64,000 nucleotides of DNA from Haliotis cracherodii (GCF_022045235.1 NW_027266275.1:17236001-17300000), one strand, 5' to 3'; shown: positions 13,787 through 50,978, counted from the first letter of the stretch. Program-made: numbers and translations. Notes: generated by a model not told the origin, from the letters alone.

Positions 13787-14687
13787 TCATAGTTTGATGC
13801 CCCAGCTCATCCGACATCCCCCAGGCCGTCTATCAGTGTCGTCCCGGTAGTACGTCGTCCACTGGTTGGCCTTGGCGCAGAGATCTTGAGCCACCCCTCC
13901 ACCACACTGACCACCGTCACCGTCAGCATACCAACTGTAGCACAGCTTGGCATTCTTCAGCCACTTCGGGGATGTGCTGGCAACAGACAGCTTCCAGGAC
14001 ATTCGACATCCACCAGGTCGCCTGTCGGTGTCATCCCTGTATATTCTAGTATATGTTCCAAAGGATGCGCAGTAGGTGTCTCGTGAGTATCCACAACTGC
14101 CAGCATCTCCATCAGCATACCATCTGTAGCAGAGTTTTACTGAATGGAACCACAATGGCTGCGTCTTACTTTTCGGAATGAGTCCCCAACTCATTCTACA
14201 TCCTCCTGCCCTTCTGTCAGTGTCATCTCTGTAGACTTGAGTCATTCGTCCAGGTGGTGCACATAGAAGTCTACCAACCCCTCCACCACACTGGCCAGCA
14301 TCTCCATCTGCATACCACTTGAAGCATAACTGTAGGTCATCGGTAAACCACGAAGGGACTTGAAAATCCAGTGCAACTTCTTTGCCAAGCTGGTCCACAA
14401 TGCTCTGGGTTGGCTCAATCTTTTTCAGTTCTGCTCTTACTCGTGTGAGAAGTGATTGTACGCCACTGAATAATGCTGATGCAATCAAAAGTCGCTCGAT
14501 TTCCCGGAGGTTGGCCTTGTTGATATAGCTACTTACCGCACGCTCGAAAGACTTCTTTTTGGTCGCATCCTCAACAAAGTCACTGAGAGAAGCTATTTCC
14601 CCCGAAAAGAGCCATGGGTTTGTTATGACTGTAGGTTGCCAAGTGCTTAGACCTTTTGAAAGTAGATTGACATCACCACCGAAGTAC
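13787..14687 (-). CDS. MACPF protein (perivitellin-2 67-kDa subunit-like), exon 3: end of MACPF domain plus three Cys-rich C-terminal repeats
   Basis: Acceptor TTTTTAAG|G, phase 2. Reads (K)YFGGDVNLLSKGLSTWQPTVITNPWLFSG..., then 3x LC(F/Y)xWYADGDxGxC...YRDDTDRRxGGCRMSW, then stop. Confidence 0.9.
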
Positions 14688-15069
14688 CTTAAAAATGTAT
14701 TAGATATCGGATATAATTATTATCATATAGGCGAATGGGTAGACTTGTACACCGCTTGTTCAAGCCATATAGCTGCTGAGGATATTAGAACTGGGCTTCG
14801 AACATGTACCCACGTAAAGAATCGAACCAGGGTCAACTCTTCTACCATAGGGCTACCCCACCGATCTCATACTTATATGATGCATGACCTTTATCTGTAG
14901 TTTTTCAATTGTTACCCCATTTTATTCTGAGTTCTGTTTAAAACCTCCTGAAAATTTGTATGCCCCGTCACAATTTAATTTTTTACGCCCAATGGAATCT
15001 GATATCACGACTGGTTATTGTCCAGCGTTGGCGTTCTATATTTACTCAAACTGGTGAACCTTTTGCTGT

Positions 15070-15242
15070 GGGCGGACGGGTAGCCTAGTGGTTAAAACGT
15101 TCGCTCGTCGCGCCGGAAACCCGGGTTCGATTCCCAACATGGGTACAAGTTTTGCAGCCCATATCTGGTGTCCCCCGCCGTGATATTGCTGGAAAATTGC
15201 TGAAGGCGGCGTAAAACCATACTCACCCACTCACTCACTCAC
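15070..15242 (+). mobile_element. tRNA-derived SINE, family A (MACPF intron 2)
   Basis: A and B boxes, ACTC tail, TTTTGCTG flanking duplication. Confidence 0.88.
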
Positions 15243-15669
15243 TTTTTGCTGGAGGACCCCGAGTCCCCTAGTTTCATCCTACGCTCTGGAGCATTTATAA
15301 ATTATGCAGAGTCAACTACAAAAATATACAAAACGTCGGAGCACAACCAGTCTCTATGATATTGGCGAAAACAGATTCAATTGAGCGTAAAAGGCAAAAT
15401 AGTGCTGAAAATAAGTTCAAAATTAACATATCGTTTTCAGTTGCAACACAATTAGTAAACACGCTATCATGGCACTGGTTATTCTGGTCGGTTACAGGAT
15501 TGTCTGGTCAAGACTTGTTTATTTACAGGCTGTCGTCGTGTGGCAGGAGTACTGCTGTGCGGCGTTAGGCTACACCCAACACCTATTCGAATTGTGTGAA
15601 TGATGGGAAGAGCAGCATCCATTCCTATGGCGTCATCCATTCATATAATTTTCCACTATTTTGCCTTTA

Positions 15670-15932
15670 GGGGGCACGGGTATCCCAGTCGTCTAAGGTG
15701 CTGCGATTCGCTGTTCAGAGTTGCGTCAGAAACCTATGATTGTGGGTTCGAATCCCGGTTCGCCCCGATTATGTTTCAAGGTTTGTCAGCACCATACCCG
15801 TGCTCGTGGGTTTCACCGAAGTGGTAAACGTCTGAGACCTGCATCACTTCGGGCTTTCCTCCCACATTAAGCTGACACGCCGTGATATAAGTGTTAAAAG
15901 CGGCGTTAAACCCAACTCACTCACTCACTCAT
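15670..15932 (+). mobile_element. tRNA-derived SINE, family B
   Basis: B box GGTTCGAATCC, ACTC tail, 13-bp TSD TATTTTGCCTTTA. Confidence 0.88.
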
Positions 15933-16089
15933 TATTTTGCCTTTAACGCCCAATAGAATCTGTTTCGGTATGCGTTGTATGGACGTTTTTGTCTTACAGC
16001 ATGCTCGTTTTGGGGGTGGGCACATAATGGTGTGCGTAGTGTGAGAAAGGATTAGTTTAAAAATGTATAAAATTTCTAAACAAACCTAC

Positions 16090-16670
16090 TTAAGAGATTC
16101 AGTTGAAGATTTCTTGAAGTTTCTATCAATCCGGCTGCTAGAACTGGAACCGCTGCCTCTAATTTTCACCAGACTGAGAAATGATGCCTTGGCTTGAGCT
16201 TGTACATCTCTTGTAGTCTTCCCATCGTAGTAGCTTGATTTGGTTTCAATGTGCAGTTTTATGGCTCCACCGAAGTTACCGGACGTAAAATAATGAGTGC
16301 CAAAGTAACGAATAAATCTAAAATAAGATGACGGATTACTCGTAAAGCTTGTTGAAAGCCTGTCAATAAAGCGTTTAAAGTACCTACTGGTCTCCAAGTC
16401 AAATGCTGGTAGAAAGTCAATCTTCAAGGCCGCGTCGTAAGCTGATACTTCCTCAATATACTGGGATGTACGTGTAAGAGTGTGTTGCATCTTGGTGTAC
16501 GACCCACTGGCTGAAAACATGCCATACTTAAAACCCACGCTGATTCCAGCACTAGCTGCCATTGTCTTTTTCACTTCATTATAGTTCTTAAAGATCTTCT
16601 CGTTAGCATGTGACCAACCTCCCGGCACGCTGAGTATGTCCCATATTTGATCTGGGAGATCGTATGTGTT
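16090..16670 (-). CDS. MACPF protein, exon 2 (MACPF core)
   Basis: Acceptor TTTTCCAG|AAC, donor AA|GTAGGT. Contains the MACPF signature YFGTHYFTSGNFGG. Confidence 0.92.
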
Positions 16671-17410
16671 CTGGAAAATATAGAATTGTTTTGTATTTTT
16701 GTGGTTACATCGGAATTGGTTACTTCAAAAGTACAGGAAACGGCCCGATCGATGACAAAAGCTCAAGAAAAGAGTATTGTTTGTCTGAGATAGTAATTAA
16801 ATATGGAGTTTGATAAATACTATATGTCGTTTCGACAGGTGTTTAAACGTTCGAGTATTTTTATAATGGATTGGGATAGCTAGGCTGTTTGTAAACACAA
16901 TTTCCATTCATATAGATTTGAAACACACTTTTGCGTCATTCAATTAAATATGCATAAGTACTTATCTTATGAATCCCCATCCTTCTAAAAAACCAAACTC
17001 CAATTTAATCAATCAGAGTCAACAATCGTAAGATCATTTAGGATTGTATTTCAATGTATGCAAGAGAAATTATTTCTGTCTATGTCTTGGTCTCAATGCA
17101 TGTTCTTTTAAAAGAGGGTCGATGGGGAAGGTAGACTATTGTTTAAAGCGTTCGCTCATTTTGCAGAATGACCAGGTTCGATTCCCAACAAGGCCATTTA
17201 TGGAGCCCCTCGCCGTGATATTGCTGAAATACTTTTAAAAAACCATAATAATTTACTCACACACTCTCTTTGAAAGATGTTAGTTAATATTTAGCCTTTC
17301 GTAGACAACTTCACTGCCTACTTCGATCGTAAATGATGTACATTAGAAATTGTAAATCCATCACTTCAGTAAAATAATTCACTAATTATTAGCTTATCGC
17401 ATCGTTTTAC

Positions 17411-17641
17411 CTTTTTACGATCGGTCCAGGTAAGGTTCAGATTACAGGTGAAGTCAATAATCGGTCTCTTGAATCCATCAGGATTGCTAGTCGTCAGATC
17501 AAGCGGCAAAAGATCTAGGGTTGTTACATCCACCCCTCGTCTCATCTTGTTGATGCCCGGGGGTGGGGAGGGACATCTCCTCCCATCCGCAAGGGGAAGG
17601 GCGGAGAGAGCAAACACCAGAATAAGACACCCAAACACCAT
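17411..17641 (-). CDS. MACPF protein, exon 1 (signal peptide and N-terminus)
   Basis: Signal-like MVFGCLILVFALSALPLADG, then the GVDVTTLDLLP motif. Donor AAG|GTAAAA, phase 0. The three exons total 1713 nt (570 aa). Confidence 0.9.
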
Positions 17642-18036
17642 CGCTGTTTAGCTGGCTAATGACGCAGAATACAAAGTTGAGTCTGTATATAGTCAAACGC
17701 GTCATCTACTGCACGGTTCATGTAGCTTGGTACTGTTTCCCTATGAACCCTAGCTTATTGGATATGTGTGTTGTGTTGGTTTGTTGTGTACTTTTGCTTG
17801 GAGTAAACTATGACAGTGTTGTGTTGCTTGGAGTACATGATTAAAATGTGTGTTCTTTGTATTTCAATGTCATAGTGTTGTGTAAGGAAACAATGTGAAA
17901 AGTTTTGTGGTGACTTTAGAATTGCAGTGTTGTGCTTTGAGTACAGGGTGTTAATGTTTTGTTGAGTGAGTGAATGTGTGCAATATGACAGTGTTGTATT
18001 TTTAAACCAATGTGACAGTGTTATGTTTTGAAAATA

Positions 18037-24207: not shown

Positions 24208-24273
24208 TCACGACACGTGTTTTCCAGTCTTACACCCGTGTTGGTAGTCCATCCTTCCACAGTTGTAGCATGT
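24208..24273 (-). CDS. RING/TRAF-ZnF gene, terminal exon (TCYNCGRMDYQHGCKTGKHVS*)
   Basis: Acceptor TTGCAG|ACA, phase 0. Completes the Cys/His motif begun in exon 2. AATAAA at 23769-23774 on the minus strand. Confidence 0.8.
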   Translation of the reverse strand, partial: TCYNCGRMDYQHGCKTGKHVS

Positions 24274-24318
24274 CTGCAATGGCAATTCATGTGTGTGCAA
24301 TGCGTACGCTAAGACTTA

Positions 24319-24615
24319 TGGCACTGGTGGCCCAGCCGCCTAAGGCACCGCAATTCGCTATGCAGAGTTGCGTTCCTTCGGCACGCCAGGAATCTATGAT
24401 TGTAGGTTCGAATCCAAGTTCGCCTCGATAATGTTTCTATGTTTTTCAGCACCATACCCGTGATCTAGGTTTCACCAAAGTAGTAAACGTCTGAGACCTG
24501 CATCACTTCGGGTTTTCCTCTCACATCAAGCTGTCACGTCGTGATATAACTGGAATACAGTTTCAAGCGTTAAACCCAACTCACTCACTCACTCACTCAC
24601 TCACTCACTCACTCA
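24319..24615 (+). mobile_element. tRNA-derived SINE, family B
   Basis: Homologous to the 15670 copy, with a long (ACTC)n tail. Confidence 0.85.
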
Positions 24616-24746
24616 CAGTCCACTCACAGTCATGTAGATGCATCCAGAGTAAAGAACTATCCATACCACATAATTTTAATTCGCCAAAAGTTAAAGAATG
24701 AATCACAATACAAGTTAAGATTATGATAACAAAACATATTACTTAC

Positions 24747-24749
24747 CCC
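24747..24749 (-). CDS. RING gene microexon 6 (GGG, Gly)
   Basis: caaatag|GGG|gtaagt. Confidence 0.65.
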
Positions 24750-24981
24750 CTATTTGTCCGCAGGTGGTCGAGATCATGAAAATAAATGAAGACATGCCAT
24801 CATTCCTTTTGCCATTTGAAAACAATAAAGCTGTAAGTTCTGTATTATCTGTATCGATGAATGTCCGTTAATAGAAATGATACAAATATGGGAACTGTTA
24901 TCTTATCAAGGACTCGTAAAAAGCTATAAATGTACGTAATACAATTTACTTTTATTATTATAATAATCAATCCATACTTAC

Positions 24982-24984
24982 ACC
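24982..24984 (-). CDS. RING gene microexon 5 (GGT, Gly)
   Basis: ttcgacag|GGT|gtaagt. Confidence 0.7.
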
Positions 24985-25279
24985 CTGTCGAACACAGTTG
25001 TAGGTAGAGCATGAAATACAAACAAGTACCAATTATTATTTGCCATGAAACATGTCACGAAGTGAAGGAACCGACCATATTCCCCCAGAAATGAATAATA
25101 TGACCCAAAAATACAAATTAAACGTTTCACGAAAAACACACATTAATTGGACGCCTGAATGCAATAATGTTCGTTGGTTGAAAGAAATGGCGAAAATTAA
25201 ACTTTTCCTAAATAGAAATGTCCAAAAGTTACCTCAAGTTACACACACACCCACAAAGAAGAGAAGAAATTATACTTAC

Positions 25280-25285
25280 AAAAAG
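25280..25285 (-). CDS. RING gene microexon 4 (CTTTTT, Leu-Phe)
   Basis: cttgatag|CTTTTT|gtaagt. Confidence 0.7.
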
Positions 25286-25399
25286 CTATCAAGATCGATC
25301 AATATGAAAAAGAAACAAAAATACATCTTATTCTAATTTGATTAGGCTGATTAGGTGAGGTGGAATTGCACTCATATAGCGACGCGACGCGACTAATGC

Positions 25400-25597
25400 C
25401 GCAGTTTAACATAAATACCCTACTCAGTATGCTCCGAGCCGACCAGTCCTTGTTTTACCCTTTTAACGCTGAGCGCCAGGCAAGGTAACAACAAGTACCA
25501 TCTTTTAACGTCTACTGGTATGACGCGGTCGGGGATCAAAAACCCGATCTTCCGCTCTCCGGGCAGACGCTCTATCCACTAGACCAGGGAGTCGGTC
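25400..25597 (-). mobile_element. tRNA-derived SINE, family D
   Basis: Head CTAGTGGATAGAGCG...TTGATCCCCG. Body shared with the 22335 copy. Confidence 0.75.
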
Positions 25598-25816
25598 GAT
25601 TGGTGTGATAGTAGAGAAGTACATGAACGCGTCAACTATAATACAACCTCATGTGCATGTCAAAATTGTGCAAACTTTCAACCTTCATTGTACACAAGAT
25701 TAAGATCGTTAACAATGAGATCTCATTGTTATCTCTTATCAAGGTTTTATGCATGTTATAACTCTTGTAACTTTGTAGTTTACCATTTTATTAATTCCCG
25801 AAATGTATACACTTAC

Positions 25817-25822
25817 GTCGAT
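25817..25822 (-). CDS. RING gene microexon 3 (ATCGAC, Ile-Asp)
   Basis: CTAAC branch point and pyrimidine tract, then gggacag|ATCGAC|gtaagt. Confidence 0.72.
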
Positions 25823-27387
25823 CTGTCCCATCCATATGAAAAAAAGGAAGAAAAAATATTTGTTAGTCTCTCATATGATTCTATATGTTTAGGTACACAT
25901 ATTTATGTGGCGTAAATATACAGATTAAATATGATATAACATATACTCACTAAATATAAATATATTCTTATAAAGTTTACGTATTTAGTAAATAGTTGTG
26001 TGCACGTAACATGAAATAGTAATATGTGAAAAGAAAAGGAATGATCTGCGAAAAATATTTAATTGAATTATTTAAAGATGATTTCATGTGTTATTAAGCA
26101 CATTAACACTTGTTAATAATATCATGTTACCATTAATCATTTGTTTTTAACTGAAATGAAAATTGAAATGGTAGCTCTTTTCTTATAACACAGCATACCT
26201 TATAAATTACATACACGTGACATTCACCACTACAGAACGAAAGTGACATTCACCATTACAATTAACATGAAGTAACTCTCATCTGTGCAATAGTGTCTGT
26301 CATAGGGAAACGAGCACTTACACATGTGCAGTAGTGTTGTTTATAGACATAATCACCATGACAACGGCAACCATGATTGTGTACACTTCATGCTGTTAGG
26401 AAAGTACATCTCAACATCACCATGGAAACGAACAGGCATGTACATGTAGTTTCGATAAATGGAGTGACAGATTGAAATTTATCCATCTTTAAGAAATGTA
26501 ATTAATTGTTTAAGGTGAAATAGTCTATTGCATCTGTCTTTCCAAGTAGGTGGAAGAATATTATAAATATACACCATTCAACGATTTCCATCGTATATCT
26601 CGGAATGTAAGAAAACATTGATACCAATAGTTCACAATTAGTATTACCTTATGGGGTCGCATTTGATTGTGATACTAAATATATACAAAACATGAAAAAT
26701 AATGTTAAAATACGTGAGGTTTCAAAAGATTCTGTTGAGACATGATAAAACAGACATTGACCAAGAAAACCATAAGTGGCACTGCGAAAAATATATCACA
26801 GGTAACGCTATTTACATATTTACATGTACACTCGTACATATCTTTTTCAGCACAGTGGCATGGTTTGACTAAGGCATGTGTGACATTAATAATAATTTAC
26901 AAAATAACTGATTAGATTTTATGCAGCTTTAATGATTAGCTACACCCCGACGCGAAACAGGCGTGTTTTTGTACCCAAGTGGAGAATCGAACCTGGATGC
27001 TAGGAGTGACAAGCGAATGTTTTAACCACTAGGCTACCCCGAAGCACACACGGACATTAAATAAAATACATTCTCATATATATAGACGTCGACATTACCT
27101 ATATATTAAGATCCGTTTCATGCAAGCCAGATGCCATACATACATGTCAGTGGCTGTACAGTAGATGATATATGCAGCAGTGAGCATAACCGAGTGCGAA
27201 GGAAGCTGGTGTACGTGTTTCAAAGGAGGTGTTCGAGGACCACAGAGATAATATTTTCGTCATGTAATGTAATGTTTATGTCTCATACGAGACATATAAT
27301 AGGAGGAGCAAACTGTGTGAAATAAGTCCCTTTGGATCATAATTTGGGATATATTTGTGGTCGTATGGTGATTCTTGCTGTAAAACT

Positions 27388-27623
27388 TGAGTGAGTGAGT
27401 TGGGTTTAACGCCGATTTTAACAGTATTCCAGTTATATCACGGCGTGTCAGTTTAATGAGGGAGGAAGCCCGAAGTGATGCAGGTCTCAGATGAAATCCA
27501 CGAGCTAGGGTATGGTGCTGACCGGGATTCGAACCCACAATCATAGGTTTCTGGCGTGCCCAAGGGACGCAACTCTGCACAGCGAATCGCGGCGCCTCAG
27601 ACGACTGGACCACCCGTGTCCCT
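27388..27623 (-). mobile_element. tRNA-derived SINE, family B
   Basis: Homologous to the 15670 and 24319 copies. Confidence 0.85.
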
Positions 27624-27886
27624 GTAATACTTGAGGTAGGGATGGGGGGAGGAGTTTTTAATTCAGATCTACATCTACAACTCAACATATATATCCGTTT
27701 TTGAAATGCAATCGTAATAATCATTAGGCTAACCCACCACTCAGTTTACCACAATGAACACAGATATAACAGGTTATTCATGTAGCCAGTTCCATACGCT
27801 TAACAAAATGTATGTCTCCTCGAATATCTCCTTCCACATGGGCGCACATCGTATCACACAAGAAGCACACATACACATATACTTAC

Positions 27887-27889
27887 AAT
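27887..27889 (-). CDS. RING gene microexon 2 (ATT, Ile)
   Basis: CTAAC branch point and T tract, then atccgcag|ATT|gtaagt. Confidence 0.72.
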
Positions 27890-28121
27890 CTGCGGATCAA
27901 ATGAAAAAACAAAGGCTATTAGTTAGAAAAATAAGTTTTTTTATGAACATACAGAATAGAGACTGATGTGATCAAAATGTTAACCCCCAAGTCTTTTGGG
28001 GTAGAATTTGAAAAATGAATATTTTACGATTCTTCGGTGGAAAAGCAAATATTCTGTTTATTTCGTAGAGGTGTTATAAAGTCATGTTAAATATTAATGT
28101 AAGTAGAAAGAGTATACTTAC

Positions 28122-28124
28122 TGG
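28122..28124 (-). CDS. RING gene microexon 1 (CCA, Pro)
   Basis: T-rich tract, then gccaacag|CCA|gtaagt. Confidence 0.7.
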
Positions 28125-28962
28125 CTGTTGGCGTTACATGTAATAAAAATAAAGAGTTTAAAGCGATTACGTTTAACAACTGCACCAGGTTACAATAAAA
28201 ACGACAAAAACACTTTCCATTTTCATATGAAATATGCTAAAAGGAGAGTCCATTTTTCGATGTTTCCGACTACTAGCATGTCATAAAGCATGTGTTTATG
28301 AATCACTATCCGATAGTGATGATACTAGGTGGTCAGGAACAGTTTAGCGTATCCTGTCCCACTAGTGGCACCCGTCAGTTTGACAAACACATGCAAAGGC
28401 AAGTTAATGTTTCACCTAAAAAAAACATAGGAACTTAGGGTACGAGTCAAAACAAAAAATTGCATCGGACATCATTTTCGTCACTGATGCGTCAAATTTG
28501 GAAATGTCCTCCACGTGTCTACCATAAAACAACAAACGCTTTGGGAAAAAAATGGTAAGTAAAACCATTATATCTCCTGATAATTATTTTAAATATAGCT
28601 ATTGGTCTGGTAAATACACAATGTCAGTGACACTGCAGTGAATGGTTCAGAATCGTTAGGATAAAGACTTAAGTCGTTACACTTAAATCATAATATATAC
28701 CATTCTACAGAGATACTCAGTGACGGTGACTGTCACTTTTACTTATTTAATTGATGAACTAATTTGTACTCAATACTTTTGCAATCACACACTTTTATAA
28801 ATGCATTTATGACCTGGTCCACATCCAGATGATATGTATCTCATAGGACCAAACTAATATACTCATGCTCATAATTATAGTCACCCCTATGCCGACGCGC
28901 ATATATCTATCTACGTGATGACAATAATTATGGGCATGAGATATAAGTAGTTGTAAACTTAT

Positions 28963-29673: not shown

Positions 29674-30136
29674 CCCTGCGTGGTAGGTGCATGCCATGCT
29701 ATGGTTGCCCGCTTCTCTGAATGGTTTCTTGCAATTCTTACACGTGAAGACATCCTGCCCTGCGTGTGACGGCCTAGGAGATTTGCCAAGACTAAGAACT
29801 AGAGACTGGTTCTCTGCAACTGAATCCTTTGACTGTGGAGAGCTGTCGGAGAACATGTCATCGCTGGTGTCGTCATTGTGTTTAGAACGTACACTGTCCA
29901 AGTAGCTTTGCTGCTTTGATCTGAAATGGCTCATGACCGCTTGTCGTTGATGTCGTTCAAGTTGAAAATGTTGACGTAGAACGTAGTCTCGGTGACGCCG
30001 GACCTCCAGGTTGGTTGATTTCGCTGCCCGCGCAACCTGTTGCCTCAGCTTCTTCTCCAGGCATCGCGTCTTGCTTTGGTGGGTGAAGAGGTCACAGTAC
30101 TGAACTCGGAACCCACAAGCCTCGCAGTCCACAAAT
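29674..30136 (-). CDS. RING/TRAF-ZnF gene, exon 2 (end of TRAF-type ZnF, coiled coil, Ser-rich linker, start of CHORD-like motif)
   Basis: Acceptor CTTCCTGCAG|A (phase 2), donor GGG|GTGAGA (phase 0). Ends CKNCKKPFREAGNHSMACTYHAG. Confidence 0.85.
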
Positions 30137-30932: not shown

Positions 30933-31342
30933 CTGTGATAGCACTCCTCGGCATGAATACTCGCCTCGCACCTCTTCACAGTCTTACAACATCCAACGTT
31001 TTTGTAAGGACAAGAAACAGGAGCGTTAGGACACACATCAGCCACGTGGTCGGGAAGATCCGCTAGCTCGCAAACAATGCCACACCCATGGTTACACTTG
31101 ATTCTCAACCTCAACAGCTTCAGTTTTAGCTCCACCGATACCTCCGAGGACTCTGCGTTGAGCTTGGTTGAGCATTCCGGACAGTATCGAGACGTCCTGG
31201 TCTTGCTGCGCCTCCAGATGCACGACTGACAGAAGATGTGATGACAGGAGTTTGACACGGGGTTCACGAACACTTGGCTGCAGATGCTGCAGATGAGGTT
31301 CGGGTCTATTGTGCCAACAAATAAAGTCAGATCGAGACCCAT
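30933..31342 (-). CDS. RING finger (C3HC4) + TRAF-type zinc finger E3 ligase, RNF151/RNF41/PDZRN3-like, first coding exon
   Basis: MGLDLTLFVGTIDPNLICSIC...CHHIFCQSC...CPEC, followed by CNHGC...HVADVCPNAPVSCP...GC...HAEEC. Donor AG|GTACGT. The full model including microexons is 963 nt (320 aa). Confidence 0.9.
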
Positions 31343-31656
31343 AACGCCCTCAGACGCTCTGTTCAGGGTGTTTGTGTTATTGGAGTGTTAAATCTCAGTC
31401 CAAGAATTGGGTGTATTGTCAGATGCTACAAATACCACAAATGCCGATTTCGAACCTTTCTGTTTGTCTCGGTATATGTTCAGAAGCAACCGACGTACGT
31501 ACTTAATTTCAGTATCACTGCATTATATTACATTACGTATACGTACGGTTTGCTGATAGAACATTTCTGAAAATAAAATAATATGGATATGTCACAATTC
31601 TAAATTCAGTCAATTTATAAAATGACTCAGTAACAACGTAAATTACCCAAGAAAAC

Positions 31657-32945
31657 GGGTTGATATGGGAGTCTTGGGTTGATATGGTCTAGGGTTGATA
31701 TGACAGTCTCGGGTTGATATGGCAGTCTCGGGATCATGTGATAGTCTCGGGTTGATACGACAGTCTCGGGTTGATATGGGAGTTTAGGGTTGATATGGGA
31801 GTCTAGGGTTGATATGGGAGTCTTAGGTTGATATGGGAGTCTAGGGTTGATATGGGAGTCTTAGGTTGATATGGGAGTCTAGGGTTGATATGGGAGTCTA
31901 GGGTTGATATGGGAGTCTTAGGTTGATATGGGAGTCTAGGGTTGATATGGGAGTCTCAGGACAATGTGATAGTCTCGGGTTGATAGGGGAGTCTCGGGTT
32001 GATTTGACAGTCTCGGGTTGATATGGGAGTCTAGGGTTGATATAACAGTCTCAGGTTGATATGGGAGTCTAGGGTTGATATGGCAGTCTCGGGATCATGT
32101 GATAGTCTAGGGTTGATATGGGAGTCTCGGGTTGATATGACAGTGTCGGGTTGATATGGGAGTCTAGGGTTGATATGACAGTCTCAGGTTGATATGGGAG
32201 TCTAGGGTTGATATGGCAGTCTCGGGATCATGTGATAGTCTAGGGTTGATATGGGAGTCTCGGGTTGATATGGGAGTCTAGGGTTGATATAACAGTCTCA
32301 GGTTGATATGGGAGTCTCGGGTTGATATGGGAGTCTTGGGATCATGTGATAGTCTCGGGTTGATATGGGAGTCTCGGGTTGATATGGGAGTCTCGGGTCG
32401 ATATGGGAGTCGTGGGTTGATATGGGAGTCTCGGGTTGATATGGGAGTCTCGGGTTGATATGGGAGTCTAGGGTTGATATGGGAGTCTAGGGTTGATATG
32501 ACAGTCTCAGGTTGATATGGGAGTCTAGGGTTGATATGGCAGTCTCGGGATCATGTGATAGTCTAGGGTTGATTTGACAGTCTCGGGTTGATATGGGAGT
32601 CTAGGGTTGATATAACAGTCTCAGGTTGATATGGGAGTCTCGGGTTGATATGGGAGTCTCGGGTTGATATGGGAGTCTAGGGTTGATATGGGAGTCTCAG
32701 GACAATGTGATAGTCTAGGGTTGATATGGGAGTCTCGGGTTGATATGGGAGTCTCGGGTTGATATGGGAGTCTAGGGTTGATATGGGAGTCTCAGGACAA
32801 TGTGATAGTCTAGGGTTGATATGGGAGTCTCGGGTTGATATGGGAGTCTCGGGTTGATTTGACAGTCTCGGGTTGATATGGGAGTCTCGGGTTGATATGG
32901 GAGTCTCGGGTCGATATGGGAATCTCGGGTTGATATGGGAGTCTT
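31657..32945. repeat. Minisatellite, ~19-20-bp unit (GGGTTGATATGGGAGTCT[A/C])
   Basis: Direct tandem repeats visible in the sequence. Confidence 0.95.
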
Positions 32946-36442: not shown

Positions 36443-39010
36443 TCGCTCACCCTACAACAGTATTGTGTGTGGCAATTAAGTTATCTGTACCTAGCTTTTC
36501 ATACCATCATTGAATAACTCATGATTCCGGCTGTATACGTGTATTTGATGTCAGCACAGTTTCAAGAAACTAATAGCTCAATTTTGTGGATAATCTCTCG
36601 TTTGAACTGCTGTAGATTGAGGACATTTTGTGTCGAGCTGTAGGAGCTTTGTCTGTGGAATGTAATTGGTTGACACCTGAAGAAATGTATAGCTTGGACC
36701 ATGTACGGGTTCGGCAGACATATACACACATGCACACATAGACTCTCATGCACGGACACAGCCCTGTCTCCTACGTATTACTGCTGTCCCAAATATCCAT
36801 GTGTCACTGAAAATGTTGGGGGGGGGGGGGGGGGGGGGGGGGTAATTTCTCAAATGTGTAGATCATTCCGAGTAACAGGTAATAATTGCGCCTGGATGTC
36901 CACACAAACAGTGTTTGGATAAGCATATGGACATTACAATACTGAATCCCCTCGTATTTCATACCACCGACGGATTCACTTAGACATGTCTTCCCTGTCT
37001 GCAAGCTAAGCCCCCCTGAGTTCAATGTTGACTGACGTGTTTGGGTTTCCCGGGACTGGAGCATCATGAGGTTGGTTGTGTGGCTTTTTGGTTGGTTGCG
37101 TGCTCAGCCTGTCGCGTGAGTGGAGTGAGTGAGTGAGAGTTGTTGGTTGGTCGGATGAGTGCGAGTGTGTGTATGTGTGCGAAAGGGACATCATTGGGGT
37201 TTAGCTTCACCTCTATAACTGGTGTGGACGATGTTCCCTCTACGCAGGGTGAATGAGTGTGTAAGTAAGTAAGTTGAGAAATACCAACGAGGTGCGAGGA
37301 ATTAAGAGTTATCCGCCCTCGATATTTTTCGTATAATCGTGATGTCATCAATTTGTGAGGTCGTCAACAGCATTCAGATGCGCTAAATGCACATGCGCAA
37401 ATATCAGAAAGTTATTACACCAGACACCAAAACAGTAACCCCATACGTGTCTTGGAGGGCCCTCTACACAAAGTGAGTGAGTGACTACGGTTTTATACTG
37501 TGGTCCCAAATGGGGAGTATCTGTTCTGCCACGATGCATGTATGCTATAATAGGCATTCCTGTAAAGACAATCCTGTGGTCGATCGCGGGAGCAACGACA
37601 TACATGTACGTCTACGCGATATAAAGACACACGCCCAGCTGGAACACTGATATATATATGGTTTTCCTTAGTGGTCATCCATTGTTGGCAATTAACCACC
37701 AGTTACAAGAAATCGTCAACAACGGATTATCAAGAGAACGAAATGAAGTAAATAAGAACTTGTACAATAATTACCTTTATCACATGAGAGGCAGACAACG
37801 TATAACAAAATATATTTACGAGTATATGGAACACGAGCTGTTATATATGACATTTACGAGCAAATCCTTCTCTTTATCGGAGAGAGGTGATTATACTATT
37901 CAGTATTAAAAACAGTACTGTTCAAACATATGTCTTATCTAATCAACGTTTTCATTAACACATACATATACAATATTCACAAACATCACTATGAGATGTA
38001 CAACTATGTCAAAGCAAATCCTGAAATTGTTACAAAATACATTCATGCATACATAAAATCAAATGGTACACAGGAATGTATGTTTAAACAATTCATTTTG
38101 CAAGACCATACTCTTGCTGGAGAAACAGTTGTAAGGTAAAATGGGATATTAATACAGGATATGTTAACCACATTTAAAATATATTCCATTAGTTTAATCA
38201 TGGGGATTTCCTAATATACTGATATAAAATGCAAACACGAGAACATTTTATCCATTTACAATTCGTCTATACATACATGCAATGTATCAACTTACCCGCT
38301 TTACAAACGTCCCAACACGAAGCATGAATCCTAAAATGTCACCTTTTGCCTGACACTGACAACGATCCGCCCTTCACCGTCACCCATATTTATGTTCCTT
38401 GTGCGGGGAGCGTTAACACGACAATCAATCAAACCCTTATAATAACAGGGGGAAATCTGTGGGACACTCTCACCTAGCGACCCACCACGGCCCTATTGAA
38501 GCGTCCCTGGTTACCAACAGGGTGACAGTCAATAGTTTGGATAGTTTCTTTTCTTGTCTCCGTGACTTCTTACACACTTTGTTTATTGATTTAACGCCTC
38601 TTTTTAACGTCAGACATTCTCATTTTCCTATATCTTACAGATCATAGCTTGTTGTTGAAAGCTATAAACACAAAACGTACTCGTTTATGAGTATTCAGTA
38701 GCTTTAACTAAAGCTCACAATCACATTTTCACGACTGATCAACATTAAGTACGCGAACATATAGATATTTACAGATTTCACGCCAGATCTGTAAACTATA
38801 AATATCAACAGTAAATCCTATTTCTTAAGAATCGTGGTACGTATTTACATTTTGATTGATATTGTACTATCAGGGGACACTCAAACGATAAGGGATAGTC
38901 ATTGGACACGTCAGGAGACAAGCCAGAGGGCAAAGCAGATGACAAGGCACTGGGCATTTCAGATGCTACTTCAGAGGACAAGGCACAATGCACTTAGGAA
39001 TACAAGGTAG

Positions 39011-39551
39011 AGGACACCTCAAAAGACAGGGCAGGGACACCTCAAAAGACAAGGCAGAGATCACCTCAAAAGACAAGGTAGGAACACCTCAAAAGACAAG
39101 GCAGGGACACCTCATACGACAAGGCAGGGACACCTCAAAAGACAAGGCAGGGACACCTCAAACGACAAGGCAGGAACACCTCAAAAGACAAGGCAGAGAC
39201 ACCTCAAACGACAAGGCAGAGAACACCTCAAAAGACAAGGCAGAGGACACCTCAAAAGACAAGGCAGGGACACCTCATACGACAAGGCAGGGACACCTCA
39301 AAAGACAAGGCAGGGACACCTCAAACGACAAGGCAGAGACACCTCAAAAGACAAGGCAGAGGACACCTCAAAAGACAAGGCAGGGACACCTCATACGACA
39401 AGGCAGGGACACCTCAAAAGACAAGGCAGGGACATCTCATACGACAAGGCAGGAACACCTCAAAAGACAAGGCAGGGACACCTCATACGACAAGGCAGGG
39501 ACACCTCAAAAGACAAGGCAGAGGACACCTCAAACGACAAGGCAGGGACAC
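39011..39551. repeat. Minisatellite, ~23-bp unit (GACACCTCAAAAGACAAGGCAGG)
   Basis: Direct tandem repeats visible in the sequence. Confidence 0.93.
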
Positions 39552-39839: not shown

Positions 39840-40024
39840 NNNNNNNNNNNNNNNNNNNNNNNNNNNNNNNNNNNNNNNNNNNNNNNNNNNNNNNNNNNNN
39901 NNNNNNNNNNNNNNNNNNNNNNNNNNNNNNNNNNNNNNNNNNNNNNNNNNNNNNNNNNNNNNNNNNNNNNNNNNNNNNNNNNNNNNNNNNNNNNNNNNNN
40001 NNNNNNNNNNNNNNNNNNNNNNNN
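39840..40024. other. Assembly gap
   Basis: Run of N. Confidence 1.
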
Positions 40025-40166: not shown

Positions 40167-41765
40167 TCACAACTGAGTAGTCATCGTTTGATCAGAAGAT
40201 TGACTGTTAGCAGTAGGTATGTATTTGTTCATTTTGCCTCTCCACAGTTGAAGAACCCTTTTGTTGGCAACATAGGAGATGAAGATGAAGATCCCTTGAC
40301 CGGCGTTCAGGACGATGGAGATGAAGATGAGGACTTGCTGCTGGAGAACGTCACCGAGGATTGCCAGGATCCAAAAGATCCCTGTCAGTGTGGATAATTT
40401 AATGTAGATGTGAACCTGACTCTTCTCAGCCCCAATACTTGCGCTCATTTTATTGATCTTGGCCATCGTCCACACACTGACGCTGAAGAAAATGATGTTC
40501 AAGAGGAGGACGACACCTAGTGGAGCCACGAAAGCAACACCGACAAGAAGTGACGTATTCAGGTAGCACGTGGTTACACCATAGCCGATATGGTTTCCTG
40601 AAGAAACGCCGAGATTTGAAAATATGGTAATGAGAACAATGATCAGAGACAATCCATTGGCATAGAGGGAGTATTTCAGAAGACGACTTTGGGTACCCAT
40701 CGGTTTTCCAGCATCGACTACGAAGACATGGAACATGTGATAGGAACAGACGTTCATCCACAATATAACTGTGAGCCACAAGTAATGTATGAGAACTCCA
40801 ATTATTTTGCAAGCAGTTTCATCTCGGATGGCAACATCCTTAAACAGAAGCAGCAACTGAGCCAAGAAGAGAAACCCCACCAGACACATCGTATTCTTCG
40901 TGGGCAGGGTGAGAAGGGAAGGGAATGTGCAGTAGGTGATGAAGGTCAAGGCCAAACAGATCATAGACAAAATGGAGAAGACTAGAGTTAAAATATGTTC
41001 AGCCAGTTTGACTGGATCTTGGTAGTTTGAATACAACTCTTTCATCGTGTCCACGCATATAATTATATTTTGTTCGTCCATTTTAATGAATTTGTCGAAC
41101 TGTATTGTTATACCCACATACTGAAGAGTGATAGACGCATCAGTGTTCCAGTTAAATTCATTCACGGAGAGGTACACATACGAACAAAGTGGCAAAACAG
41201 AAGGATAGTAAACATAATCTTCGGGCGTTTCAACATACTCCAACGGAAGGCTGTCAAACATCTCGGCTTTCTGTGGATTAGTGTAGGGAGGATGCATCTT
41301 GTATAACTGTCTCTTTGAATAAGTATAAAAATCATCCTTAGACGGCGTGAACTGAAACTCCGAACCATTATACTCCATCGACCAATTATCCTCCAATAAC
41401 GCCACTATAGTTTCTTCAAATGTATCCCGACAACAGGTTTTGTTTGTCCTGAACGTCAATGTCAGTCCAAAGGATGGCACATTGACAAATCTGGCACTAT
41501 TGGCAATGTCAGTGTGCACAGGCTTTTCAACAGAAAACATATAATAGGTCATATTGTACTCCTCTGCAACTGATGGTATGTTATGGACAACCAATGACTC
41601 TATGAAATTCCAGTCCTGCAGTCTGGTGTCATATGTGTTTTTTTCAGTTGGCCAAAAGTGGAGTGCCAACTGGTACTCAACTCTGGACAATCCGACAGCT
41701 GTTAATTGACATTTTTCACCCTTGAGATGGTACCCCGAGCGACAGTACATGGAACGGCACTCGTT
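40167..41765 (-). CDS. Secretin-class (Methuselah/adhesion-like) GPCR copy 1, last exon (distal ectodomain + 7TM)
   Basis: Acceptor TTTTTCAG|AAC GAG TGC. Seven hydrophobic segments with family-B-type motifs: SILSMICLALTFITY, ACKIIGVLIHYLWL..ILWM, GYGVTTCYL, LSTLTGIFW, NAGQGIFIF. Confidence 0.92.
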   Translation of the reverse strand, partial: NECRSMYCRSGYHLKGEKCQLTAVGLSRVEYQLALHFWPTEKNTYDTRLQDWNFIESLVVHNIPSVAEEYNMTYYMFSVEKPVHTDIANSARFVNVPSFGLTLTFRTNKTCCRDTFEETIVALLEDNWSMEYNGSEFQFTPSKDDFYTYSKRQLYKMHPPYTNPQKAEMFDSLPLEYVETPEDYVYYPSVLPLCSYVYLSVNEFNWNTDASITLQYVGITIQFDKFIKMDEQNIIICVDTMKELYSNYQDPVKLAEHILTLVFSILSMICLALTFITYCTFPSLLTLPTKNTMCLVGFLFLAQLLLLFKDVAIRDETACKIIGVLIHYLWLTVILWMNVCSYHMFHVFVVDAGKPMGTQSRLLKYSLYANGLSLIIVLITIFSNLGVSSGNHIGYGVTTCYLNTSLLVGVAFVAPLGVVLLLNIIFFSVSVWTMAKINKMSASIGAEKSQVHIYIKLSTLTGIFWILAILGDVLQQQVLIFISIVLNAGQGIFIFISYVANKRVLQLWRGKMNKYIPTANSQSSDQTMTTQL

Positions 41766-42859
41766 CTGAAAAAGTCAAGACAAAACACAATGTTTAGAAT
41801 ATTATCGATTTCTTCAACAGTTAATCCATAGGCTTCAAATATTAGACATAGGTTAGTGTGAAATACAAAAGCACTGTAAATTGCGTATGTGAAACACCAC
41901 CACATAATTTCAGTCCTTAAGGTGAATAATATAATATTATTCTAATTCCAACTTTGCCACTGACTATGATTGATAATCAGGAGTAAAATTACTAAAACGA
42001 ACTCGATTACAAAGAAATATCATTGTTTCCTACCTTCAGTGACTTCTGTAACATTATTCTGTAACTACCAGCTGAGGGTTATAACTCGCATATTTCAAAG
42101 AGTAATGCTTCTGTCCACACAAAGTCCTTTGAATAATTGGAATAATATCAATTCTATGGCCTCAACAAACCAGTAGCCTTTGGAGAGTTACATAGCAGAA
42201 TGTTAGCAGTGATGCATAATTTCAACAAAGAACCAACGATGATAGGAGCCCGTGTGGCTCACAGAATAAGAAAAGTTTATTAATGAGCGATATGTCGAAA
42301 CGAATGTGAAGTAGACTGCAACACTGGCATGTTCATCTGGCATGTTCACACTGTATGTATGTATACGTTAAGTTAAAATGTGTAAAAATTGCTGATGATT
42401 TGAGAGAACGTTTCAATGTGCAAATCTGTGACTCAAGCTAATTTTCATTGTAGATCAGTACAGTACAAACACATGTTAAAAAGTAGTCCTAGTGCACGGA
42501 CTTGTCCATAGGTAGATTAGGCATACTACGATCTCTTGAAAGTTTGAAACACTAGCCCTTTTCGCTCATATTGCTCGTACTTATGTTTTAGACCATGCAA
42601 GAAGTCCACAACTTGAAAGGATTGAAAGGATAAAGGGTAACCGTCCACCATTTTACTTTGAAATTTTGAAATTTCCACCTTTGCCCAGCCACCACAGCAC
42701 TCATCGTGATCTTATAACCACCATTATTGATACCATATACATAGCTGTAAGATATACAAGCTACTGCAAGGTCATACCAACTCCTGGATGTGGTCATACT
42801 ACCAATCGTAATCAAATCATACCAGCACCTAGATATGGCCACACTGCTCATCGAGACCC

Positions 42860-43783
42860 AGTCACAGCAGGGCCAAGATAATGTGATACCACTACCTTTG
42901 TTGTAAGTTGTATTACTCATCATGACCCAGTCATATCAGCACCTACACATGGTGATACCACTACCTTTGTTGTAAGTTGTATTATTCATCATGACCCAGT
43001 CATATCAGCACCTAGATATGGTGATACCACTACCTTTGTTGTAAGTTGTATTACTCATCGTGACCCAGTCATATCAGCACCTAGACATGGTGATACCACT
43101 ACCTTTGTTGTAAGTTGTATTACTCATCGTGACCCAGTCATATCAGCACCTAGATAATGTGATACCACTACCTTTGTTGTAAGTTGTATTACCCATCGTG
43201 ACCCAGTCATATCAGCACCTAGATAATGTGATACCACTACCTTCGTTGTAAGTTGTATTACTCATCGTGACCCAGTCATATCAGCACCTAGATATGGTGA
43301 TACCACTACCTTTGTTGTAAGTGGTATTACTCATCGTGACCCAGTCATATCAGCACCTAGACATGGTGATACCACTACCTTTGTTGTAAGTTGTATTACT
43401 CATCGTGACCCAGTCATATCAGCACCTAGATAATGTGATACCACTACCTTCGTTGTAAGTTGTATTACTCATCGTGACCCAGTCATATCAGCACCTAGAT
43501 ATGGTGATACCACTACCTTTGTTGTAAGTTGTATTACTCATCGTGACCCAGTCATATCAGCACCTAGACATGGTGATACCACTACCTTTGTTGTAAGTTG
43601 TATTACTCATCGTGACCCAGTCATATCAGCACCTAGATAATCTGATACCACTACCTTTGTTGTAAGTTGTATTACTCATCGTGACCCAGTCATATCAGCA
43701 CCTAGATATGGTGATACCACTACCTTTGTTGTAAGTTGTATTACTCATCGTGACCCAGTCATATCAGCACCTAGATAATGTCA
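42860..43783. repeat. Minisatellite, 69-bp unit, intronic in GPCR copy 1
   Basis: Units start at 43021 and 43090; about 13 copies. Confidence 0.95.
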
Positions 43784-43823
43784 TGCCTCTACATTGCTTG
43801 TATGTGATAATTATATATTTTAC

Positions 43824-44792
43824 CTTGACCCAGTCATGCCACTCTTTTGCCTTACACTTTCGCCGATCACAGTTTGTACAAACAAGTGTGCTTATAGAAA
43901 CAAAAGTTTCTAAGCTTCTGCAGCTTACAATATCTGGTGACAGTCCATTGCACATATAACAGAAGATATTCTTGAACAAGTACGTTCCCCCAGCAACTGG
44001 GTAATAGATTCCAACCCTACATTGTTCCTCGGTTATGTCAGAGAAAGAACCATCCCATGACCCGGTCTTGTTGCACGAGTCTATGTACTGTTGATCAGCG
44101 AAATCAGTGTCACACGGTCTTGGTAGTATATCAGATGGAGGATGAATAGAAGCTATGCAATCTGTTGAGCTGTCATTGCCGTTTGAATGAGATGAGTTTC
44201 TCTTCTTGTGACATACATTTTCCTTTACCCATCTGATGGTAATGTTATCGTCATGACATCTGGCGATTCCTTCATTCAAGTACGTGATATTTGTTGTAAT
44301 CGAAGTCACTGGAGTGAGGTCGTCTGCTGATATCTGAGAAGCAGACGGCATTTCGAGGTTGGACTCTTCCGGACATGTGGTTATTATGTAGTATCCAGTA
44401 TGGGGACCAGTGAAGACATATTTTTTATTTGTTCCACTGACACAAACATGCCTGTTTTCCCTTTCCATCGTCACATTCAACCTTTCGTCTGGACAACAGT
44501 CGCCATATTCATTACAGTCAGCATCACAACGACATGTTTTGCAGATTGGATTGGCTGACGGGCACCCACGGTCAATGACCTTTGTGACTGTTGTACCGTT
44601 GCAGAATACATTGCAGTGGAGAATGGACATGCCTGTAGTCGTATTAAGAACTCCGTTCAAGGACACATCTTTCACAGAGGTCAATAGGTCGTTGAGGTAG
44701 AACCCAAACACGTCGTCAGATGAGTCATTGCTTGTCATTTGGGTGTTTATGAAGACAAAATTACACAAGGCGATGTAGAAATGAAACTTCAT
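43824..44792 (-). CDS. GPCR copy 1, first coding exon (signal peptide, somatomedin-B-like and Cys-rich ectodomain)
   Basis: Start MKFHFYIALCNFVFI, then CRCDADCNEYGDCCPD and FKNIFCYMCN. Donor AAG|GTAAAA, phase 0. Joined protein is 855 aa. Confidence 0.88.
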
Positions 44793-50799: not shown

Positions 50800-50967
50800 N
50801 NNNNNNNNNNNNNNNNNNNNNNNNNNNNNNNNNNNNNNNNNNNNNNNNNNNNNNNNNNNNNNNNNNNNNNNNNNNNNNNNNNNNNNNNNNNNNNNNNNNN
50901 NNNNNNNNNNNNNNNNNNNNNNNNNNNNNNNNNNNNNNNNNNNNNNNNNNNNNNNNNNNNNNNNNNN
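50800..50967. other. Assembly gap
   Basis: Run of N. Confidence 1.
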
Positions 50968-50978
50968 AACCCACTTAC

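Follow-up and report, generated by a model that had tools for sequence, protein, structure and literature searches.

A TTTCAT Element at the Displaced Pyrimidine Tracts of Six Ultra-Short Exons in a Haliotis cracherodii RING/TRAF Gene

Introduction

How an exon smaller than the footprint of the spliceosome can be recognized by it has long been an open question, and most of the data bearing on it come from SRRM4-dependent neural microexons of 9–27 nucleotides (nt). The SRRM3/4 (eMIC)-dependent neural microexons of mammals and Drosophila have a long AG-exclusion zone; their strong pyrimidine tract and branch site stand away from the AG, which leaves the local 3' splice site weak, and their 5' splice site is very strong (PMC8797185; bioRxiv 10.1101/2024.09.17.613571; PMC12871342). 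In this study, we analyzed a 64,000-nt stretch of DNA from the black abalone Haliotis cracherodii (GCF_022045235.1 NW_027266275.1:17236001-17300000; hereafter the window, numbered from its first letter). Its minus strand carries a RING + TRAF-zinc-finger E3 ligase gene, 'PDZRN3-like', with six chained exons of 3 or 6 nt, each preceded by a T-run that ends, some distance before the AG, in the hexamer TTTCAT or, at one exon, TTACAT.

Other described systems also resemble this locus. In exons with an AG-exclusion zone and a distant branch point, a search that starts at the branch selects the AG (Gooding et al., 2006, PMC1431707). REPA elements lie between the pyrimidine tract and the 3' AG; they comprise G-tracts and the CA-rich CaRRE, and are mostly silencers of vertebrate alternative exons (PMC4320613). 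Plant microexon clusters are mis-annotated and conserved over hundreds of millions of years, and their flanking introns are removed successively, with detained introns (PMC8831610). The novelty of the abalone gene lies in the invariant hexamer that closes the tract on its 3' side; the layout as a whole has precedents in the microexons of fly and mammal. A first-pass annotation of the window had called the whole architecture non-canonical, a term that fits mainly the TTTCAT element itself and goes too far for the displaced tract, the AG-exclusion zone and the strong donor, which had been described for fly and mammal.

Results

Six Microexons Between Two Ordinary Exons

The chain was located on the minus strand, between 24500 and 28500, by a scan for AG-N(0-12)-GTAAGT, which placed six units inside 3.4 kb. 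The exons of the gene are:

30933–31342, minus strand: exon 1, with the ATG at 31342–31340, Pfam RING and zf-TRAF matches, and donor AG/GTACGT
29674–30136, minus strand: exon 2, terminating in ...CTYHAG, with an ordinary acceptor (ccttcctgcag) and donor GTGAGA; its C-terminal end, CKNCKKPFREAGNHSMACTYHAG, starts a CHORD-like zinc module
28122–28124, minus strand: microexon 1 (ME1), CCA, Pro; cag acceptor; donor GTAAGTAT at 28114–28121
27887–27889, minus strand: microexon 2 (ME2), ATT, Ile; cag acceptor; donor GTAAGTAT
25817–25822, minus strand: microexon 3 (ME3), ATCGAC, Ile-Asp; cag acceptor; donor GTAAGTGT
25280–25285, minus strand: microexon 4 (ME4), CTTTTT, Leu-Phe; tag acceptor; donor GTAAGTAT
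24982–24984, minus strand: microexon 5 (ME5), GGT, Gly; cag acceptor; donor GTAAGTAT
24747–24749, minus strand: microexon 6 (ME6), GGG, Gly; tag acceptor; donor GTAAGTAA
24208–24273, minus strand: coding part of the last exon, TCYNCGRMDYQHGCKTGKHVS then stop; ordinary acceptor gccattgcag at 24274, without TTTCAT

All six short units close with YAG, 3 or 6 nt of exon and GTAAGT. RNA-type contigs from four runs of four related organisms stop exactly at 29674 and 24274, and one 1368-nt RNA contig bridges the two positions with 23 unplaced letters and one more that fits either side, making 24. This total of 24 equals 3+3+6+6+3+3. Their translation, PIIDLFGG, fits the P[IM][IV]x[VL]FGG found in 11 transcript-derived (Logan) mollusc proteins, which read C.WH.G-P[IM][IV]x[VL]FGG-TC..CG..DY..GC..G.H; the exons were searched singly and set beside these natural proteins. 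Together with the breaks in public gene models described below, this shows that the six microexons of 3, 3, 6, 6, 3 and 3 nt are real and used. The eight residues are present in all transcript-derived orthologues, which suggests constitutive use of the microexons.

The stretch P[IM][IV]x[VL]FGG-TC..CG..DY..GC..G.H is carried by transcript-derived proteins only. All genome-based public models of the family (P0001–P0058) have a wrong C-terminus, namely those of four Haliotis species, Dreissena, Mya, Mercenaria, Ruditapes, Mactra, Saccostrea, Pinctada, Mizuhopecten, Solemya, Littorina, Nucella, Sinanodonta, Magallana and the nemertean Lineus. The fault arises because exons of 3–6 nt are beyond what annotation pipelines can place. 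After P (ME1) or PI (ME1 and ME2), the Haliotis NCBI models render GTAAGT as 'VS'; in the X2 models of H. rufescens and H. rubra, 'PI' is followed by intron read-through, and model XP_071107706.1 (P0005) is identical to the window gene, exon 1 and read-through tail included. In other species the models break as PM/VS (Mya) or P/V. (Mercenaria, Saccostrea, Solemya), run straight into the intron after C.WH.G (Ruditapes, Mactra, Pinctada, Mizuhopecten, Littorina, Lineus) or omit the eight residues (Nucella, Sinanodonta).

Other accounts of these short exons were tried and rejected. Were TTTCAT itself the end of the intron, the exons would sum to 131 nt, and the RNA has 24. A recursive splice site (ratchet point) does not agree with the 3 or 6 nt between AG and GT and with the 24 nt kept in the RNA contig. 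The introns are not of the U12 type, their donors being GTAAGT or GTGAGA rather than RTATCCTT and the branch site TCCTTAAC being absent. Nor is this a schistosome-type micro-exon gene (MEG), a class that encodes secreted proteins mainly through symmetric exons of 6–36 nt, as here microexons supply 24 of ~960 coding nt and the product is an intracellular-type RING/TRAF protein without signal peptide.

The C-terminal module of the protein, C..C-x12-C.[YW]H.G-8 aa-C..C-x7-.GC..G.H (24208–24273 and 29674–29770, minus strand), looks like a shortened CHORD zinc-binding domain. Its CHORD matches all lie under the curated thresholds (Pfam PF04968, E = 0.0065–0.023; RAR1 CHORD-II 2xcm, E = 0.011; CHORDC1 2yrt, E = 0.037), and the module appears weakly CHORD-like by sequence. 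Exon 2 is single-copy in the abalone genome, so there are no paralogous in-genome instances of the microexon chain.

Related abalones also yield unspliced contigs in their RNA-type runs; these span ME2, ME3, ME4 and the ME5–ME6 intron (24754–27940) at a depth of 3–10, compared with 4–13 for spliced contigs, contig depth being a poor measure. The introns flanking the microexons may be removed slowly, that is, be detained.

Displaced Tracts Closed by TTTCAT

The acceptor side of the six units consists of the following elements:

28138–28143, minus strand: TTACAT closing the T-run before ME1, the sole motif variant (plus strand ATGTAA)
28125–28137, minus strand: ME1 spacer, 13 nt, AG-free, ending in CAG
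27922–27926, minus strand: CTAAC branch-point consensus 5' of the ME2 T-run, its branch A 34 nt before the exon
27901–27906, minus strand: TTTCAT closing the T-run before ME2 (plus strand ATGAAA)
27890–27900, minus strand: ME2 spacer, 11 nt, AG-free; with the exon, 27887–27900
25862–25866, minus strand: CTAAC branch-point consensus 5' of the ME3 T-run
25836–25841, minus strand: TTTCAT before ME3 (plus strand ATGAAA)
25823–25835, minus strand: ME3 spacer, 13 nt, AG-free; with the exon, 25817–25835
25304–25309, minus strand: TTTCAT before ME4 (plus strand ATGAAA)
25286–25303, minus strand: ME4 spacer, 18 nt, AG-free; with the exon, 25280–25303
25011–25016, minus strand: TTTCAT before ME5 (plus strand ATGAAA)
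24985–25010, minus strand: ME5 spacer, 26 nt, AG-free; with the exon, 24982–25010
24776–24781, minus strand: TTTCAT before ME6 (plus strand ATGAAA), with another TTCAT 6 nt further upstream
24750–24775, minus strand: ME6 spacer, 26 nt, AG-free; with the exon, 24747–24775

For comparison, ordinary acceptors were taken from myosin-head exons found with PF00063, each acceptor being assigned within the interval from the preceding in-frame stop to the match. Their source is a myosin-heavy-chain-like tandem array of ~15 genes on the same chromosome-scale contig (G000:C12:64.58-64.96 Mb). The best T-rich 8-mer ends 12–27 nt before the AG at the abalone microexons and at a median of 5 nt in 53 ordinary acceptors, and the pyrimidine fraction at -3 to -14 is 0.33–0.67 against an ordinary median of 0.75. 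The AG-exclusion zone extends well past the motif, to 24–170 nt in the six units versus a median of 34 at ordinary acceptors. UGC lies between tract and AG in two of the six abalone spacers (ME5, ME6) and in 2/6 bivalve spacers (within TGCAG), 4/12 in total. The first-pass annotation was accurate on this layout: all six TTTCAT/TTACAT positions, the spacers of 13, 11, 13, 18, 26 and 26 nt including the YAG with zero internal AG, the CTAAC before ME2 and ME3, the displacement of the T-run from the AG and the inconsistent presence of UGC were each verified.

A stable RNA fold was sought in the six abalone units and none was found; five of the six fold less stably than shuffled sequences (z +1.1 to +1.8). 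The acceptor tails of ME3 and ME4 are alike (z = 8.2), and the other abalone units have no alignable similarity.

Two sources of the motif were tried and discarded. Pairwise and multiple alignments show the ME3/ME4 tail similarity only, which does not agree with a recent duplication. A transposon origin of the acceptor regions was rejected on repeat depth, which is near zero there, unlike in the SINE-filled parts of the introns (SINE, short interspersed nuclear element). Copies of a tRNA-like SINE with (GTGA)n / ACTC microsatellite tails occupy 24330–24620, 25380–25620 and 27000–27650. Contig depth is 1e4–6e5 over these intronic copies and ~0–10 over the acceptor regions of ME1–3, ME5 and ME6, and the ME4 depth bin is raised by the adjoining SINE.

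In the contig of one relative, the 65 nt upstream of ME6 (24754–24818: spacer, TTTCAT and T-run) show no difference from the window, and the remaining 158 nt of the ME5–ME6 intron have six substitutions and a 23-nt deletion. This is a weak sign of constraint on the 65 nt (about P = 0.08).

The Motif Exceeds Chance at Abalone Microexons

The minus strand of the window holds 42 TTTCAT, of which five are at microexon acceptors. For the background, TTTCAT followed by an AG-free spacer of 8–30 nt was counted in 264 kb of DNA from the same genome, the locus itself being masked:

All YAGs: motif share 0.75%; P(≥5 of 6) = 1e-10
YAGs with an AG-exclusion zone ≥26 nt: motif share 2.5%; P(≥5 of 6) = 6e-8
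YAGs with an AG-exclusion zone ≥26 nt and a T-run: motif share 6.1%; P(≥5 of 6) = 5e-6

Among the ordinary abalone acceptors, 2/53 have the motif arrangement, both of them doubtful calls, compared with 5/6 microexons (Fisher P = 2e-5). The motif at the abalone microexons is therefore more than chance, and the suggestion that it stands out from both random AGs and ordinary acceptors is upheld.

Conservation in Two Bivalve Loci

A family-alignment scan of JGI/ENA metagenome contigs yielded two contigs with DNA downstream of the C.WH.G exon. The first, L042 (6987 nt), is nearest to heterodont bivalves and 64% identical to Ruditapes; the second, L044 (2859 nt), is from a second bivalve and 60% identical to Mya. 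The features of L042 are:

2392: end of the CRWHIG exon; donor GTGAGT
3066: P microexon, CCG; upstream tttttaTTTCAT; TTTCAT spacer 9 nt; donor GTAAGT
3451: M microexon, ATG; upstream cttcatTTTCAT; TTTCAT spacer 10 nt; donor GTAAGC
3951 (3951–3962): IQVF exon, 12 nt, without TTTCAT; tttatttctattacag adjoins the exon; donor GTGAGT
4457: G microexon, GGG; ctgtTTTCAT upstream; spacer 37 nt; donor GTAGGT
5206: G microexon, GGT; upstream ttttcattttctTTTCAT; TTTCAT spacer 18 nt; donor GTAAGT
5409: last exon, TCFACGRLDYQPGCASGFHRV; ordinary acceptor

In L044, TTTCAT stands 10 nt before the acceptor end at the P microexon and 8 nt before it at the M microexon, after which the contig ends. On the plus strand of L042, 5/7 TTTCAT are at microexon acceptors. 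The AG-exclusion zones measure 28 to >78 nt in L042 and 41 and 66 nt in L044. Across the three loci, the motif is absent at the 12-nt IQVF exon and at all ordinary exons, among them the acceptors of the CHORD exon (tttgtttcag, atgtttccag) and the last exons, and pyrimidines adjoin the CAG at the IQVF exon and at ordinary exons.

The recurrence of the hexamer might be functionless, a leftover of ancient duplication, a product of T-rich composition or the result of post-hoc pattern picking. CAT does follow TTTT in 3% of cases in the abalone background, and ME3 and ME4, whose tails are alike and which together correspond to one bivalve 12-nt exon, indicate that at least one unit was probably duplicated; the remaining units, however, have no alignable similarity. 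The hexamer had been fixed from abalone before the bivalve loci were seen, and it recurred at 6/6 bivalve 3-nt exons, compared with 2/424 background YAGs (P < 1e-7), within different surroundings and with different spacers. Neutral intron sequence does not last over the gastropod–bivalve distance, and we consider a functionless recurrence very improbable.

Neither the intron surroundings nor the spacer lengths are conserved between abalone and bivalves. A motif kept while the surrounding intron and the spacer lengths vary is the pattern expected from selection on the motif itself; on this comparison, the motif in this gene is evidently selected and has been kept since before the gastropod–bivalve split. 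The shared acceptor architecture thus stands as non-random and evolutionarily conserved. The middle four residues are encoded by two 6-nt exons (ID, LF) in abalone (25280–25841, minus strand) and by one 12-nt exon (IQVF) in L042, which suggests either that local duplication added an intron in the gastropod lineage or that the bivalve lineage lost one.

Regularities Across 12 Units and Their Readings

Pooling the abalone gene with the two bivalves, the top 6-mer is TTTCAT (11/12 units) and the top 7-mer TTTTCAT (9/12). The letter right after CAT is R in 11/12 and the next T in 10/12, a purine occupies -4 of the real acceptors in 12/12 compared with 27% of ordinary ones, and the donor is GTAAGT in 9/12. 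The commonest ordinary abalone acceptor hexamer is TTTCAG (10/37 after paralogue collapse), with C at -3 in 81%; the view that TTTCAT mimics it is borne out by the single substitution that separates them.

From the end of CAT to the donor there are 16, 14, 19, 24, 29 and 29 nt at abalone ME1–6, 12, 13, 40 and 21 nt in L042, and 13 and 11 nt in L044, so that the minimum over the 12 units is 11 nt. The idea that TTTCAT relieves steric crowding gains support from this range of 11–40 nt in 12/12 units and from the 12-nt bivalve exon, which has an ordinary acceptor and no TTTCAT.

UUUCAU might instead be the branch-point sequence itself, with its A attacking the 5' splice site, the U-run lying upstream and the spacer being the interval from branch to 3' splice site. 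A U-run upstream of the branch is the arrangement of fission-yeast and small fly introns, and UUCAU fits the metazoan branch consensus, yUnAy; however, in the course of ~500 million years one would expect a generic branch site to shift from one yUnAy variant to another rather than remain TTTCAT. The C before the motif A is invariant (12/12), unlike the R of CURAY branch sites, and with this C in place of a purine the pairing to the GUAGUA box of U2 is poor (two Watson–Crick pairs plus wobbles, by hand). The position of the A suits a branch: it lies 9–38 nt before the acceptor G in 12/12, the first downstream AG is always used, and ordinary abalone introns often have their likely branch site just 8–25 nt from the AG. 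In contrast, a branch 12–17 nt from a U1-bound donor would increase crowding, and with a spacer pyrimidine fraction of 0.2–0.7 there is no pyrimidine tract between motif and AG. As for other candidate branches, YTRAY occurs 18–27 nt upstream of CAT in four units, ME2, ME3, one L042 unit (B1_G1) and one L044 unit (B2_M), as perfect CTAAC/TTAAY at the canonical position upstream of the U-run. Four units lack YTRAY elsewhere, and in the M unit of L042 the sole adenines within the 28-nt AG-exclusion zone are those of two UCAU. Considering both sides, we regard the branch-point reading as possible and rather unlikely.

A third reading takes UUUCAU(RU) as an intronic splicing enhancer for a sequence-specific protein, for instance a Nova/Pasilla-type KH protein reading YCAY, with a role like that of UGC–SRRM4. 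It sits in the same place as the UGC enhancer, after the pyrimidine tract and 8–37 nt before the AG, and conservation runs two letters past the hexamer, to RU. UCAU is present in 11/12 units, with a second UCAU within ~12 nt in three or four of them; nevertheless, Nova-type binding requires clusters of about three or more YCAY, and each unit has one or two, below a cluster of three or more within ~45 nt, while ME1 has ACAU. With the required cluster absent, the Nova/Pasilla reading offered in the first-pass annotation is not supported. Furthermore, Nova sites immediately before an exon usually repress it, and yet these exons appear constitutive. A literature search for UUUCAU or UUUUCAU with splicing found no such enhancer, the matches being a CPEB non-consensus element and YB-1 binding to CAUC. 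An enhancer of this kind appears improbable.

Two further candidates were rejected. The GT that often follows CAT might be a regenerated donor, or the spacer might form a tiny intron, but GT is present in only 6/12 units and the spacers are too short. An extended pairing of spacer UUGAUC with U2 nt 26–31 is out of register between units.

Pattern Counts in the Genome

Pattern matches were counted in the 1.18-Gb assembly, with the reversed pattern as control:

TTTCAT-N8-28-YAG-NNN-GTAAGTR: 125 matches, control 174
TTTCAT-N8-28-YAG with a 6-nt exon and GTAAGTR: 121 matches, control 104
TTTTCATRT-N2-31-RYAG-NNN-GTAAGT: 7 matches, control 7

Among the listed places, no second cluster of matches exists besides this locus, tandem repeats aside. 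Genuine exons of ≤6 nt would be few amid the chance matches, and the test is a weak one. A wider claim would make Yn-TTTCAT-spacer-YAG a general code for ultra-short exons across the genome or across molluscs. In three species, all 3–6-nt exons of the gene have the motif, the 12-nt exon lacks it, and nothing in the motif looks specific to one gene; the counts (125 vs 174, 121 vs 104, 7 vs 7), however, speak against such a code, which we hold to be improbable, for the genome or for molluscs. A dedicated splicing code beyond this gene, as first proposed, finds no backing in counts that match those of the reversed patterns. The element is, as far as tested, a property of this gene, and a genome-wide code is unsupported.

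Other Features of the Window

The window also contains the following features:

1389–3155, 7092–9243, 9510–10163, 10609–11265, 31656–32944 and 39002–39551: minisatellite arrays with a period of 19–46 nt and 15–94 copies; the array at 31656–32944 (19 nt × 68) lies ~300 nt before the ATG of the E3 ligase gene
13790–17647, minus strand: the next gene downstream, with a signal peptide and a MACPF (perforin-like) domain (Pfam PF01823, E = 1.5e-12)
39840–40024 and 50800–50967: runs of N
40170–44828, 47856–51998 and 59390–61144, minus strand: a two-exon gene present as three paralogues in tandem; its large exon encodes a secretin-family seven-transmembrane receptor (PF00002, E = 2e-11), and its upstream exon is cysteine-rich, with no Pfam match
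42847–43777: a 69-nt unit repeated 13.5 times in tandem, within the intron of the first receptor copy
54200–55162 and 62523–63172, plus strand: remnants of Tc1/mariner-type transposases (DDE_3, E = 1e-8 and 1e-6)

Discussion

The reading that we favor takes UUUCAU as an AG-less pseudo-acceptor within the known displaced-pyrimidine-tract architecture of microexons, because the motif is one letter from TTTCAG, its C is invariant, it obeys a distance rule, and CTAAC/TTAAY lies upstream in four units. We would give this reading about an even chance of being correct. The acceptor would consist of two parts. The first would be an assembly site, the U-run ending in UUUCAU, a copy of UUUCAG with the cleavable G replaced, with a branch sequence of the CUAAC/UUAAY type 18–27 nt upstream of UUUCAU in several units. 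The second would be a 'naked' RYAG without adjacent pyrimidines, 8–37 nt downstream and the first AG of an exclusion zone of 24 to >70 nt, followed after 3 or 6 nt by a GUAAGURU donor fully complementary to U1. As to the factor that binds UUUCAU and the order of events, we infer that U2AF and U2 would assemble on the branch site and the U-run/UUUCAU, at least 11 nt away from the U1-bound donor, and that the second step would take the next AG downstream, because UUUCAU cannot be ligated.

Several observations weigh against this reading. The 24-nt insert in the RNA is known by its length and not by its letters. The ordinary acceptors form a set of modest size, chosen by a pyrimidine-rich criterion and including paralogues, and the comparison covers three species and one gene. 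The base composition at the exon starts of ordinary abalone acceptors does not account for the conserved RT after the motif. No YTRAY lies upstream in ME1, ME5, ME6 and one L042 unit (B1_M), and the motif A could be the branch there. Finally, counts of the motif with a 3- or 6-nt exon and GTAAGT are no higher than the controls, so that either the element is gene-specific or the test is too weak.

A more inclusive proposal is that UUUCAU(RU) is a dedicated sequence-specific element, whether AG-less pseudo-3'-splice-site or factor docking site, which would license exons of ≤6 nt by a spacing of at least about 11 nt and would predate the gastropod–bivalve split; we put it forward tentatively, as somewhat less probable than its opposite. 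UUUCAU(RU) may also serve other ultra-short lophotrochozoan exons. The locus provides a natural series of twelve 3–6-nt exons in three species, with variable spacers, a motif-to-donor distance never below 11 nt, and a 12-nt exon without the motif. It offers a distance threshold that can be tested and a specific element that can be mutated.

Compared with the eMIC microexons, the abalone and bivalve units share the AG-exclusion zone, the displaced tract, the strong donor and the rationale of relieving crowding, and the abalone regions from branch to AG are unstructured (5/6 less stable than shuffles), in line with the accessibility described for that class (PMC12871342). Unlike eMIC microexons, just 4/12 units have UGC, with UUUCAU at the 3' end of the tract instead, and the exons are 3–6 nt long, six in a chain and apparently constitutive rather than neural-specific; the donors, unlike those of fly eMIC exons, are consensus-strong.

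The units also resemble AG-exclusion-zone exons, in that the first AG past branch and tract is used, AG is depleted over tens of nt and the tract is not adjacent to the AG. In AG-scanning, the AG is selected by a search from the branch. Those exons are defined by branch distance, however, and a conserved acceptor look-alike lacking the AG is not known from the end of their tract. As with REPA, an element is inserted between tract and AG and separates them; here, in contrast, inclusion is constitutive and the sequence is different. Known decoy 3' splice sites, such as In100 of caspase-2, keep their AG and act as repressors. The abalone element is likewise an acceptor look-alike proposed to engage 3'-splice-site factors without ligation there, but its G is replaced, and it is proposed to promote the downstream AG. 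With the plant clusters, the abalone chain shares ultra-short coding exons, long conservation, their omission by annotation and signs of detained introns (unspliced contigs), whereas it belongs to an animal and joins six microexons, compared with at most two or three adjacent ones reported in plants.

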